Of a DNA stretch of 15,465 nt, positions 7,817-11,552 are shown piece by piece (the stretch's first letter is position 1; each line of letters begins with the position of its first letter). The notes beneath the pieces were generated by a model, which made no database searches, was not told where the DNA came from, and saw only the letters and a list, made by a program, of their open reading frames with translations. The position numbers were made by a program, and so were the translations under genes. The stretch lies in sequence record NC_001338.1; one strand, 5' to 3'.

Positions 7817-7817
7817 G

Positions 7818-7851
7818 CTCTTTTTAAAGTCTACCTTCTTTTTCGCTTACA
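7818..7851 (+). promoter_or_regulatory. T3 promoter (leaderless a291) overlapping the upstream terminator
   Basis: tttttaaa 7821-7828, ~25 nt before ATG 7852; T-run ~7839-7843. Confidence 0.85.
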
Positions 7852-8727
7852 ATGAGGAAGTCCCTTCTAGCCCTACTAACCCTATCCCTAGCGTTACTAT
7901 CGTTTTTAATAACACCATCGATGGCATTGAATTCTGGCGGTTCACCGATACCGATATATTATAACTATTATAACTACTATAGCCTTAACGCAGAAGGGTT
8001 TGGATTCAGTTTCAATAATAGCAATAATTGGGTTGAAACGAACTTTATCTCAATAACCATAAACTTACCTAGTTCATTACCAAATAACTATCAAATCAAT
8101 AATGCCTATTCTATCGTAGTAGGATTATCACCATATCCGGTTAGCAATATAAACATTTTTAATAGCCCATTAGAAGCATATGTTGAACTATTCTCAAACC
8201 CACCGAATACATATCCAAATGAAATAGGATTTGTAGTTAGTTACGGCTCAACTGTATTTTATAGTTATACCACACTGTATAGCAGTTTTGCGGGCACACA
8301 ACTAACAATAACTATATCATATACCGGAAATGGGTTTGGTGTGCAATTCTCTGACAGTAACGGGTTCTCTCACTCAGTTTCGGTAAGTTCGGTAAACTTT
8401 GTACCATATGGTGCTCTAATACTCGGATCACTAATCCCGAACGGGAACTATTACTACTACCCAGTAGGTAACATGTTACCGAATGCATCGGTGAACTTCT
8501 CATATACGATCTCAAGTTTCACAATAGAAGGAAACCCGGCCACATCCGTCGATATTACCACACTTGGATTAGAAGGAAACACTGCAATATATACTTCAAG
8601 TAGCAATTGGTTCAAATGGGTATCCGGTAGTGTGGTTATCACAAATGCCGTTGCCTATACCTATACCGATTTGGCTAGAATAGGAGGAAGTGCACAAATA
8701 AACTATACTGCATCGCAGCTATATTAA
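7852..8727 (+). CDS. a291: A291, predicted secreted glycoprotein
   Basis: Signal-peptide-like MRKSLLALLTLSLALLSFLITPSMA; N/S/T/Y-rich; sequons NNS, NAS, NFS, NYT; no C-terminal anchor. Confidence 0.92.
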   Translation: MRKSLLALLTLSLALLSFLITPSMALNSGGSPIPIYYNYYNYYSLNAEGFGFSFNNSNNWVETNFISITINLPSSLPNNYQINNAYSIVVGLSPYPVSNINIFNSPLEAYVELFSNPPNTYPNEIGFVVSYGSTVFYSYTTLYSSFAGTQLTITISYTGNGFGVQFSDSNGFSHSVSVSSVNFVPYGALILGSLIPNGNYYYYPVGNMLPNASVNFSYTISSFTIEGNPATSVDITTLGLEGNTAIYTSSSNWFKWVSGSVVITNAVAYTYTDLARIGGSAQINYTASQLY

Positions 8728-8734
8728 GCAAAAT

Positions 8735-8752
8735 CTTTTTTTACCTCTTTTT
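8735..8752 (+). terminator. Oligo-T terminator after a291
   Basis: ctttttttacctcttttt. Confidence 0.75.
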
Positions 8753-8765
8753 AAATCTGTCTTAT

Positions 8766-9140
8766 ATGAAAAAACTGTTTACAGTTGTAGGTTCTATTTT
8801 CTCTGGTTTGGGGATTTGGCTTAAGTCAATAGACCAGTCATTTTATTTAACGAAAGTATTGTATAACGGAAAAGTAATTGAAATAGTTCTAACGCCCGAG
8901 ACAAATGAAGTCGTGAAATCTTCCAACGGTGTTATGAACGCAAGTGTAACTTCTCTACCTTCCACAATTCTATACCAAGCACAATCCGTGCCTTCAATAA
9001 ATGGAGGAACTCTTAGTGTAATAAATACCACAGTTCAACCGCCATGGTATGCTAACTTATGGCCTGAAGTCTTAACAATAGGTATAGTGATGTTGGGAAT
9101 TGCAATATTCAGCTGGATTAAACTTAAATTTAGAAGATAG
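8766..9140 (+). CDS. c124: C124, small membrane-anchored protein
   Basis: Hydrophobic N-terminus, sequons NAS and NTT, C-terminal helix followed by KLKFRR. Confidence 0.9.
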   Translation: MKKLFTVVGSIFSGLGIWLKSIDQSFYLTKVLYNGKVIEIVLTPETNEVVKSSNGVMNASVTSLPSTILYQAQSVPSINGGTLSVINTTVQPPWYANLWPEVLTIGIVMLGIAIFSWIKLKFRR

Positions 9141-9173
9141 CCCTTTTTAAAGCCATAAATTTTTTATCGCTTA
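9141..9173 (+). promoter_or_regulatory. Promoter of the c792 operon (leaderless)
   Basis: tttttaaa 9144-9151, ~25 nt before ATG 9174; T-run 9160-9165. Confidence 0.85.
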
Positions 9174-11552
9174 ATGAAGTGGGGACTATTATTCTTAATA
9201 ATGTTTATATCCATTTTTTCCCTCAACTCTTTAGCCCTATTAATCGGCGGAGGAGGGCCCAACAATAATGGTGCGGGAGTTTACACTCAGACTATAACAG
9301 TTAACGGAGGAACCGTACGAACTACTCTTAACGGTTCAACGCTTTCTACCGCACCATGGCTCAACCCCTCTTACGTAAGCGTCTACAACACATACTACCT
9401 TCAGGTTTTGCCGAACCAAGAGTATATTGACAACAACGTTTCGTTATCCCTAAATACGGCTAACATTGCGTTAAACGTCACTTGGTTATTGGCGTCCTCA
9501 AGCAATACGGGATCCTACGGTGCAATCGCCATAGGCTACGGAGTGAACTTTCCCGCGGGGTTTGTCAATAACTACGGTCCTTCCGCACCTTACACGCCGG
9601 ACGGAATCGTAATATATCTCATGAAAGGAGGCATGCCGACCTATCGTTTATTCGTATACTTCAATGGAGTTGAGCAGTTAAACGTTTCAGTCGGGTCAAT
9701 CAGTGTGGGACAAAAAATAGGTTTAGGGTTCTTTTATCTACAGAACACACTTTACGTTTACTACTATAACGGTACTTTAAAGACTTGGTCATTAACGCCC
9801 GGTACGCTGATTACTATAAATAGTAATTACGTTATAGACGCACAGAATATAGGGCCGGGCTACGGCTACGGTCAATGGGTAATAGTTAATTATCAATATG
9901 CGATGCCGGTTACTGCACAACTGACGGTTAGTTATTTCGCATTAGGGTACAATGTATATCATTTCTTAATGGCTTATGCGGGTGCTGGAAACCCGGTAAA
10001 CATAACTGCGAATAACGGGGCTTCTTACAGTATAACGGGTATAGTTGCAGAGAAGAACTTTACGATAACGGGAATTCAGCAAGGCCTAGCCTATGCTTTC
10101 AGCTTGTTAGGGAAACCGAATGGCTTATACTTATTATATATGGGGCCAATTGAGGGCAGCCCACCAACGTGGTATGTAAACGTAACCGTAGGGCTTCAGA
10201 TCGTTACACCCCAGAAAACGATAAACTACAACTTAACAATACCAGTAATCGTTGAGGGCTATGCGTTATACCCTTCTGTTAACGTACCTTCCGGAACTTA
10301 CCTAAGCGGACAGACTATTAGCTTTACCCTCTCATCGTTCTTGGGATACCCTTCAGGCTTAGGCTATTACACCGCAGTAAATCTAATCGCAAACGTAACA
10401 ATAAACGGTGTGAGTCATGCTATCCCCTATAGTTTCACCCCGATAGTGCAAACCCCGATAACTTATTACTACACTGTTATAGTGGATGAAGGACAATTTG
10501 CATTAATAGATTATCAAGGGAGTTTCACAGTCCTACCCGCACAGAGTCAGCCCGTGATATTCATTACTTCTTATCCTAGAATTGGGCTATTAGGACAAAC
10601 GATAACTGTGACTTTCCAGTTCACTTATAATAGTCCCGTAGCGAATGTAACTCAATCAGCGTTTACGCAATCATCTAATATTCTCGCTTTTGCCTATGCG
10701 AAAATGGTAACAACAAACGCTATAGTTCAGTTCAAGGCGTATTGGCTAAGTGCTAATGACGGGTTGGTGATTATAACTCAAACGAATAACTATCTAATTC
10801 CGTTTAATAGCAGTATAACGGGCTTAAACTTCGCAAACAATAGTGTTAATACGTTAACGTTTCAGATTGTAACGGGTAACTATGTACAAATAACTAGCTC
10901 AGCGGGAGGCGTGCTTACCCTAAGCAATACTAGTCCGATTATAGGAATAGGGTTCTATTACGGTTCCGGTGTCCTACACCTGAACTGGTTCTTCGTTAGC
11001 GGTATCATTTTGCAGTCTGCAACGGCAAATCAGGCTTACGTTATTTTGACGGGGACTAACCCAAATACGCTTTCACAGTATACGACGGGCTATACTAACG
11101 CTTCGGGGTTCGGTACTGTAACGCTGAAGTTGAGTTACACTCCTTACGAACTTGTGGATGTAGACTGGTACGGCGTTACATACGCTTTGTTAAACATTAG
11201 CGTTTCAAACACTACTACAGTAAGCAGTACTACGACCGTGAACACAACAACGCTTAACTATAACTACACTAAGCCTTTCAGCAATAACATAGCACCTAAC
11301 AGTCAGCTTTATGACTTCTCAGCGTATCAGCCGTGGGCGGAAATTATCGGGATTGTGGTCGTGGTCGTCATAGCTCTGCTGGGCTGGAAGTTCGGCGGGT
11401 CTGCGGGAGCTTCGGGTGGTGCGGTTATGGGGTTAATCGCAGTCAGCTACTTAGGTTTACTGCCTTGGTACCTATTCTACATCTTCGTATTCGGTATCGC
11501 TCTATTACTTGCTAAAGTATTTGTAGACCGTTTCATGGGGAGGGAGGAATGA
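9174..11552 (+). CDS. vp4 (c792): C792 / VP4, tail (adsorption) glycoprotein
   Basis: Signal peptide; beta-rich T/N/G/Y ectodomain with ~19 N-x-S/T sequons by my count; Thr-rich stalk; three C-terminal hydrophobic helices. Confidence 0.95.

Follow-up and report, generated by a model that had tools for sequence, protein, structure and literature searches.

The a291/c124 locus in Sulfolobus spindle-shaped virus 1: a probable secreted toxin, a separately transcribed membrane protein and related gene arrays in host chromosomes

What do the adjacent genes a291 and c124 of SSV1 (Sulfolobus spindle-shaped virus 1) do, and do they work as a pair? The window analysed here, a stretch of 15,465 nucleotides (nt) from record NC_001338.1, belongs to this archaeal virus, and the record names the two open reading frames (ORFs) A-291 and C-124. 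Both ORFs and their translations are borne out at 7852-8727 (a291) and 8766-9140 (c124), with the zinc-finger gene b129 on one side and the end-filament gene vp4 (c792) on the other. A preliminary description made from the sequence alone had read the pair as one cassette consisting of a secreted toxin and a membrane-anchored immunity protein. The explanation that we consider probable keeps the first half of that reading: A291 would be a secreted toxin, accompanied by a separate membrane protein, C124, for which existing tests do not support an immunity role.

The toxin half of the reading is supported, and it is already published. DeWerff et al. (2021, PMC8628083) predicted a291 as a toxin candidate on the basis of gene position. 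In SSV9 the slot of a291 is occupied by B310, which has a signal peptide and is highly expressed in carriers; B310 expressed alone from a plasmid gives supernatants that inhibit lawns and is sufficient for killing, and p29 of SSV11 likewise suffices for killing without virus (PMC8628083). The SSV9 killing protein to which the preliminary description alluded is this B310. In SSV1, halos are lost in the a291::Tn5, delta-a291 and delta-a291-c124 mutants and also in the A25L/L26A cleavage mutant (Abshier et al., Viruses, July 2026, PMC13431529); a291 and its signal-cleavage site are both needed for halo formation. The halo-less mutants still yield viral polymerase chain reaction (PCR) product and normal virions in supernatants, and a291 mutant virus has been passaged three times (PMC13431529), which is consistent with A291 being dispensable for genome replication and virion formation. 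With a291 intact, a transposon insertion in c124 has no effect on halos, and the virus stays functional (PMC13431529); c124 is not required for toxin production. Abshier et al. reinterpret halos as toxin action rather than infection, so that the same suggestion in the preliminary description had been anticipated, and they conclude that the antitoxin is still to be determined (PMC13431529).

The likeness of a291 to B310 and SSV11 p29 extends to the whole setting. All occupy the slot between b129 and vp4, encode proteins of about 300 residues with a conserved Sec signal and no membrane anchor, are strongly expressed in carriers, are followed by one or two genes for small membrane proteins, and are needed for halos; a291 additionally has its own T3 transcript. 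The differences are that A291 lacks detectable sequence homology to the proven toxin B310 (hhalign probability 0.06%) and that SSV1 causes growth inhibition and not clearing. In the SSV9 record itself (L011, 5925-6683), the first start codon after the upstream stop gives a toxin ORF of 252 aa; this agrees with the mis-annotation corrected by DeWerff et al. to B310, and the 310-aa form is unreadable there with standard starts.

The features of the locus on which the following depends are given below with the evidence for each.

7852..8727, plus strand: a291 coding sequence, a 291-aa secreted pre-protein and published putative toxin (ORF, AlphaFold2 model, PDB fold search, genetics in PMC13431529)
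7852..7926, plus strand: signal peptide, codons 1-25, predicted cleavage after Ala25 (PSMA/LN) (hydrophobicity, family conservation, A25L/L26A mutant)
8766..9140, plus strand: c124 coding sequence, a 124-aa small membrane protein on a monocistronic leaderless transcript, Tx, 8766-9172 (ORF, cappable-seq, PHROG, family alignment)
9039..9137, plus strand: C124 residues 92-124, with the conserved juxtamembrane motif, the transmembrane anchor and the basic tail (nearly invariant in the family alignment)
7817..7851, plus strand: T3 promoter, box A TTTAAA at 7823-7828, start at 7851 (record annotation; pT3 in cappable-seq tables)
8728..8765, plus strand: intergenic region with the T3 terminator (T-run, end about 8752; annotated 8747-8757) and the Tx promoter, pTx 8766 (annotation, cappable-seq)
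9141..9173, plus strand: Tx terminator at 9172 and T4/7/8 promoter, box A at 9146-9151, start at 9173 (annotation, cappable-seq)
7851..8132, minus strand: T3E, antisense RNA of 282 nt that covers the 5' third of a291 (pT3E 8132 on the minus strand, tT3E 7851; primer extension)
9174..11552, plus strand: end-filament gene vp4 (c792), included only as context, as the right-hand limit of the locus (annotation)

The transcripts separate the two genes. The T3 mRNA is leaderless, with its start at 7851 and the a291 ATG at 7852, and according to cappable-seq it spans 7851-8752 and covers a291 only (preprint 10.64898/2026.06.17.732947). Transcript Tx spans 8766-9172, covers c124 only, is also leaderless, and is seen in carrier cells and at every time point following ultraviolet (UV) irradiation (10.64898/2026.06.17.732947). 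Since T3 ends at about 8752, before the Tx start at 8766, a291 and c124 are not co-transcribed; the promoter and terminators that the preliminary description assigned to the pair are real, but they belong to two transcription units and no promoter is shared. Nearly every fusellovirus has a conserved Tx promoter (Goodman and Stedman, PMC6080066). The antisense RNA T3E is found in all conditions and confirmed by primer extension (10.64898/2026.06.17.732947), and an AT-rich, TATA-like sequence lies upstream of it on the minus strand. Additionally, the motif [CT][CT]TTTTAAA[GTC] occurs only three times genome-wide, at 7820, 8747 and 9143, and these copies bracket the two genes. At only 16 nt before the Tx start, the middle one is too near to serve as the Tx TATA box. 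The T3 terminator overlaps with it, and most C124-type host copies retain it.

The protein features of A291 fit export. Its hydrophobic stretch (residues 1-27 on the Kyte-Doolittle scale) has the form of a typical Sec signal, with MRK, a Leu-rich core and PSMA/LN, and no second hydrophobic segment or anchor is found on this scale in the whole protein. Four N-x-S/T sequons are present (N55, N211, N215 and N284). Sequon enrichment is rejected, 7.0 +/- 2.2 being expected from composition shuffles; the signal peptide, sequons and missing anchor of the preliminary description are all there, but the sequons carry no weight as a cue. The mature protein is rich in Asn, Ser, Thr and Tyr and has only 12 charged residues in 266. 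A further cue, AT-richness, was counted exactly, with G+C of 15/60 at 8041-8100 and 32/60 at 9481-9540. It likewise carries no weight because both samples are tails of about 3% in the distribution of 60-bp windows over all of the genome (lowest 3.0% and highest 2.9%; mean G+C 23.8, standard deviation 4.3) and the whole gene is ordinary, at 37.9% G+C against 36.0% for c124 and 39.7% for the genome, with several early genes lower still. A compositional anomaly or foreign origin of a291 is hence rejected. The AT-rich stretch 8041-8100 codes for Asn/Ile/Tyr/Ser-rich sequence and falls within T3E.

A291 belongs to a small family. Pfam, NCBIfam, PADLOC and PHROGs give no match, and a profile search of PDB sequences gives none even at E 10. 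A word-indexed search of 5.8 billion proteins finds three relatives (81%, 34% and 36% identity), all in Saccharolobus islandicus, and an exhaustive profile search of 1.84 billion representatives extends the family to 11 members, six of them at 101-241 aa. Outside the closest relative, the bodies of family members are only 27-41% identical, and the signal peptide is nearly invariant (residues 1-25 across five members). Profile comparison gives a marginal relation to the SSV2-type toxin candidates through the ALSP...LQAG region (probability 57.7%, E 1e-4) and no similarity to the L010/L013 toxin type. Among other SSVs, viral relatives of A291 reach 33% identity and C124 and SSV9 C108 are related by hidden Markov model (HMM). 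Homology of A291 to B310 is undetectable; what connects these two proteins is synteny, a signal peptide common to both and published predicted folds. More distant relatives have FLQAG and IIGE motifs in common, at which A291 has Glu108 (8173-8175) and Ser193 (8428-8430), respectively; the closest relative retains Gln at the FLQAG site, yet it also has Ser at the IIGE site. If these residues are functional, the SSV1 subtype may act differently. Gln165 and Asp168 of A291 are conserved.

Structure prediction places A291 in a known superfamily. The AlphaFold2 model, built from 14 sequences, is all-beta (predicted local distance difference test score, pLDDT, 77.6; predicted template-modelling score, pTM, 0.78), and Foldseek against the PDB leads to the concanavalin A-like lectin/glucanase superfamily with its two-sheet jelly roll. 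The lowest E-values (1e-6 to 3e-5) are obtained with circularly permuted GH16 1,3-1,4-beta-glucanases (1mve, 3hr9 and 3axd), whose geometric fit is poor, with template-modelling (TM) scores of 0.33-0.43 and a root-mean-square deviation (rmsd) of about 13 A. The best geometric fit is the Ustilago lectin-like protein 9h9s (TM 0.50/0.64, rmsd 4.9 A), followed by legume lectins and galectins. The top fold hit agrees with the published top hit; the modelling of A291 as a concanavalin-like jelly roll is presented here as new. The model has the beta-jelly-roll fold of GH16, with low TM-scores, whereas identity to the superfamily is about 10%, sequence matches in Pfam and the PDB are lacking, and the GH16 catalytic motif E-[ILV]-D-[IVAF]-[VILMF](0,1)-E is absent; even the loose pattern E.D.{1,3}E is unmatched. 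None of the ten acidic residues (48, 62, 108, 112, 124, 168, 226, 234, 241 and 273) is in the GH16 arrangement. The term hydrolase is weakened for A291, which lacks that motif and resembles lectins to at least the same degree. A relation to thermopsin or glutamic peptidases, raised by the UniRef label 'Thermopsin' on relatives P0002 and P0004, lacks Pfam, NCBIfam, fold and profile support: no such peptidase is among the top 50 PDB fold matches, and hhalign against a thermopsin-family protein in locus L019 gives 0.1%, covering only the C-terminal 431 residues of that protein.

Taken as a mechanism, a291 has a strong promoter to itself and is the only gene on the leaderless T3, which is abundant in carriers; its product would be exported by the host Sec pathway and cut after Ala25. 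The released protein is predicted to be soluble, of about 266 residues, almost uncharged, rich in Asn, Ser, Thr and Tyr, and folded as a concanavalin-like beta-sandwich. Extracellular A291 would then suppress the growth of uninfected Saccharolobus and so give rise to the SSV1 halos. It may act at the cell surface, either by binding glycans or the S-layer or through a catalytic site unlike that of GH16; its predicted fold is common to lectins as much as to glucanases and the GH16 motif is missing. For its part, c124 is transcribed independently and constitutively as the leaderless Tx. It encodes a small membrane protein in which two conserved hydrophobic helices enclose a variable, probably extracellular part, and it travels with the toxin as one variable cassette between conserved flanks. 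Several points weigh against this account. Sufficiency of the toxin protein is experimental for B310 and SSV11 p29, whereas the published SSV1 data establish necessity only, and the replication and virion assays of PMC13431529 are, per their authors, end-point and non-quantitative. A291 is without detectable homology to B310 and only marginally related to the SSV2-type candidates (57.7%), and its fold matches are low (TM 0.35-0.50, about 10% identity). Moreover, toxin self-protection comes from SSV9 and not from SSV1, and the negative evidence on c124 is indirect, as C124 itself was never expressed alone and challenged.

What, then, is C124? It is a small protein with the C-terminal anchor that had been described (hydrophobic window at residues 96-122, followed by KLKFRR) and two sequons. 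Residues 2-22, at the N-terminus, make up another hydrophobic helix, which the preliminary description does not mention. C124 matches PHROG 9637 (phrog_9637), a family of unknown function, at E 5.6e-28, and has no match in Pfam, NCBIfam or PADLOC. Its six close relatives (P0005-P0010; 47-94% identity) are all in cellular genomes. In the family alignment, a conserved N-terminal helix ends in W/Y-L-x-S-I-D and is followed by a variable middle of about 70 residues, then by a near-invariant PPxYANLWPE (PPWYANLWPE in C124), a transmembrane helix and a basic tail. The C-terminal motif also occurs in SSV9 C108 and in its equivalents in other fuselloviruses; C108 is a C124 homologue by HMM, with a close relative in L015 at E 2.4e-11. 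Given the basic residues at its two termini, the protein would most likely form a hairpin that exposes the variable part outside the cell. The AlphaFold2 model of C124 is weak (pLDDT 62; helix, small sheet, helix) and was kept out of the fold search. Over about 45 nt upstream of the start, all six C124-type copies are nearly identical, while the proteins are 47-94% identical. No close homologue was found in S. solfataricus, so a host copy does not explain the viability of c124 mutants.

The comparison of fuselloviruses shows the two genes as one variable block. On the left, DNA of other SSVs matches the SSV1 locus over the b129 3' end, the T3 promoter and the signal peptide (81-88% identity); on the right, it matches over the c124 anchor, the T4 promoter and the vp4 5' end (74-85%); between these flanks there is no match in other SSVs. 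When the viral loci are compared gene by gene, a signal-peptide protein of about 250-310 aa precedes vp4 except in the divergent L014 (213 aa, with membrane segments), and one or two small anchored proteins follow the toxin-like gene except in L013. The nearest viral relatives of A291, at 33% identity, are found in five Kamchatka SSVs, in which the next gene encodes 72 aa and is remotely like C124. Ten other SSVs have weak C124-like matches (31%, E 0.08); MK054212, the one examined for layout, is SSV9-like.

The cellular homologues of C124 sit outside complete proviruses, in arrays on the chromosomes of cultured strains. The four loci, mapped with tblastn and HMM searches (small-gene cut-off E < 0.01), are the following.

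S. shibatae B12, CP077717, at about 1.50 Mb, by a RAMP gene
a second S. shibatae, CP077713, at the syntenic site
Sulfurisphaera ohwakuensis, AP031374
S. islandicus, AHJQ01000001

The arrays span about 4000-7500 of L018, 4500-11400 of L021, 2000-10400 of L019 and 4800-9500 of L015, and a similar single unit, from a hot-spring metagenome contig, lies at 767-2300 of L022. Each unit in the arrays pairs part of a toxin gene with an intact small gene downstream of it. The count over the four loci is 20 intact small-gene ORFs, for most of which a C-terminal hydrophobic segment is predicted, and 15 toxin segments, only one of which is full length; the others comprise 3' fragments starting at residues 102 to 285, an N-terminal stub and a frameshifted copy. 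One internally deleted toxin gene retains the T3 promoter and start codon. Searches of the four loci for VP1, integrase, B78 and C166 gave nothing, and tblastn with VP4 gave one chance-level match (E 0.32). The loci also hold short b129 ends and another small membrane gene, one that some SSVs have ahead of the toxin, and two units retain the first codons of vp4 downstream. Types are paired throughout: A291-type toxin genes stand with C124-type small genes in 6/6 units, and the 302-aa toxin type of L008 stands with the 72-aa type in 5/5. On the metagenome contig, a 5'-truncated toxin and a small membrane gene adjoin cellular genes. The searchable literature yielded no description of these arrays. 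A survey of species-representative genomes with a C124 protein pattern and a 22-nt junction pattern was without matches for either, and a metagenome scan returned one spurious AT-rich contig only.

Two of the loci have features of their own. In S. islandicus (L015, 6001-7241), a full-length A291 relative, P0002 (81% identity), and a C124 relative (47%) lie among cellular genes, and no vp4, capsid or integrase gene is found within 6 kb. The ratio of non-synonymous to synonymous substitution rates (dN/dS) between P0002 and SSV1 A291 is 0.26, and the host may have kept this region as a toxin locus. The array of S. shibatae B12 has a PaREP1 gene and a gene with a RAMP domain (CRISPR type III) a few kb away (L018, 821-1579), and it may lie in a defence or variable region.

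Intact small genes with their promoters beside cut-down toxins argue for a function of the small gene itself, and this comparison of sequences suggests that the C124-family gene has its own selectable function, which fits a protective role. The arrays do not prove immunity. The pairing follows from physical linkage, and the pairwise dN/dS of 0.3-0.6 in the C124 family may reflect selection in viruses before capture. Furthermore, the syntenic pair of the two S. shibatae strains is at 0.60, units are rare, and the ectodomain excess is not significant: positive selection on the C124 ectodomain, with dN/dS of about 2 in two pairs, was considered and rejected (P about 0.2). That C124-family proteins are resistance determinants against fusellovirus toxins or viruses, captured by Sulfolobales into chromosomal arrays in which each small gene is retained with its Tx promoter as the adjacent toxin gene is reduced, is a tentative proposal, more doubtful than probable. 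A known parallel is found in bacterial polymorphic toxin/immunity cassettes with orphan arrays, such as the CDI system (contact-dependent inhibition, cdiA-CT/cdiI), Rhs and the acquired interbacterial defence islands of Bacteroidales. These resemble the fusellovirus locus in a conserved secretion handle, a variable toxin body with a likewise variable small gene after it, flanks whose conservation would permit cassette exchange, and chromosomal arrays of truncated toxins with intact small genes. They differ in that the fusellovirus downstream gene failed a protection test in the one virus tried, the genes are separately transcribed, truncation points are scattered with no single conserved motif, and the SSV system is archaeal and virus-borne.

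The narrower possibility is that C124 is the cognate membrane-anchored immunity protein of A291, as the preliminary description held, which would neutralise the toxin at the producer surface or mask its target. Suggestive new comparative evidence speaks for it. The two genes are adjacent and allele-linked: apart from L013, every fusellovirus locus that was read gene by gene and has a toxin-like gene carries the pair before vp4. In viruses as in host loci, the type of the toxin predicts that of the small gene (6/6 and 5/5). C124 is expressed constitutively in the carrier state, and its ectodomain varies between conserved anchors. The 20 intact small genes with conserved promoters against the single full-length toxin among 15 segments point the same way, and the array layout resembles that of bacterial orphan-immunity arrays. 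The existing tests, although indirect, are negative. Halos and virus function survive the c124 insertion (PMC13431529), SSV9 C108 neither protects lawns alone nor adds anything to B310, the second genes of SSV11 and SSV13 have no effect, and cells expressing B310 alone are protected (PMC8628083). Moreover, a291 and c124 are on separate transcripts, linkage can account for the pairing, the non-synonymous excess of the ectodomain is not significant, and among the A291/C124 units, only six in number, the toxin C-terminal variants and ectodomain subtypes do not co-sort cleanly in alignments. An immunity partner in C124 is accordingly not supported at present, and we regard it as unlikely. SSV9 producers instead appear to be protected by expression of the toxin itself, for which DeWerff et al. 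cite killer-yeast preprotoxins and halocin C8 as models of precursor self-immunity (PMC8628083). The likeness is that the toxin ORF alone protects the SSV9 producer; the difference is that B310 activity runs at the full predicted mass of the protein.

C124 may also have nothing to do with the toxin and serve entry, egress or superinfection exclusion as a membrane protein working with VP4, in which case host copies would block SSV infection. Its gene is directly upstream of vp4 in all fuselloviruses, a role in the virion context has been proposed by DeWerff et al. (PMC8628083), and the Tx gene of SSV10 was annotated as assembly/egress by Goodman and Stedman (PMC6080066). The first vp4 codons kept downstream in two host units are in line with this, and the C124 anchor marginally resembles the first of the C-terminal transmembrane helices in VP4 (P = 0.04 in comparison with shuffles). 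Any two transmembrane helices would be expected to show that much resemblance, however, and c124 is dispensable for functional virus. As the only VP4 match in the host loci is at chance level and the small-gene type follows the toxin type in host units, this role appears rather improbable.

The reading of A291 itself has to be weighed against the idea that it is no toxin but a secreted or surface spread factor, acting in adsorption, egress or S-layer remodelling, so that halos vanish through reduced spread. Necessity alone is established for A291, replication was followed by end-point PCR and virions by electron microscopy (PMC13431529), a291 insertions were scored as non-functional by Iverson 2017, and the jelly-roll fold is also found in viral tail and fibre proteins, including a fusellovirus protein of 806 aa. 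Against this, the proteins at the same position in SSV9 and SSV11 kill without any virus (PMC8628083), and the mutant virus was carried through its three passages (PMC13431529). Additionally, no similarity was found between A291 and VP4, and an intact, 81%-identical copy is kept under purifying selection (dN/dS 0.26) on an S. islandicus chromosome with no virion genes nearby. We thus judge a spread factor to be decidedly improbable. An RNA antidote, in which T3E (8132 to 7851) damps A291 synthesis in carriers in the manner of a type I toxin-antitoxin system, is very unlikely too: T3E is present in all conditions with primer-extension confirmation and its authors raise the idea themselves, but the T3E/T3 ratio is constant on induction (10.64898/2026.06.17.732947), an RNA that lowers synthesis cannot protect against toxin from outside, and protection in SSV9 came from the plasmid-expressed toxin ORF (PMC8628083).

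A secreted A291 toxin with a separate C124 membrane protein remains the preferred account, and the toxin reading explains how plaques arise from a non-lytic virus; chronic infection could benefit the host by harming its competitors. This much is known for SSV1. The host arrays add a concrete handle on the function of the ever-present small downstream gene. If C124-family proteins are indeed captured resistance determinants, the arrays would be an archaeal counterpart of bacterial orphan-immunity and acquired-defence islands and would explain how uninfected, CRISPR-immune cells escape virus-mediated killing. If the chromosomal copies protect, Sulfolobales would possess a second layer of defence besides CRISPR, aimed at the viral weapon and not at the virus.

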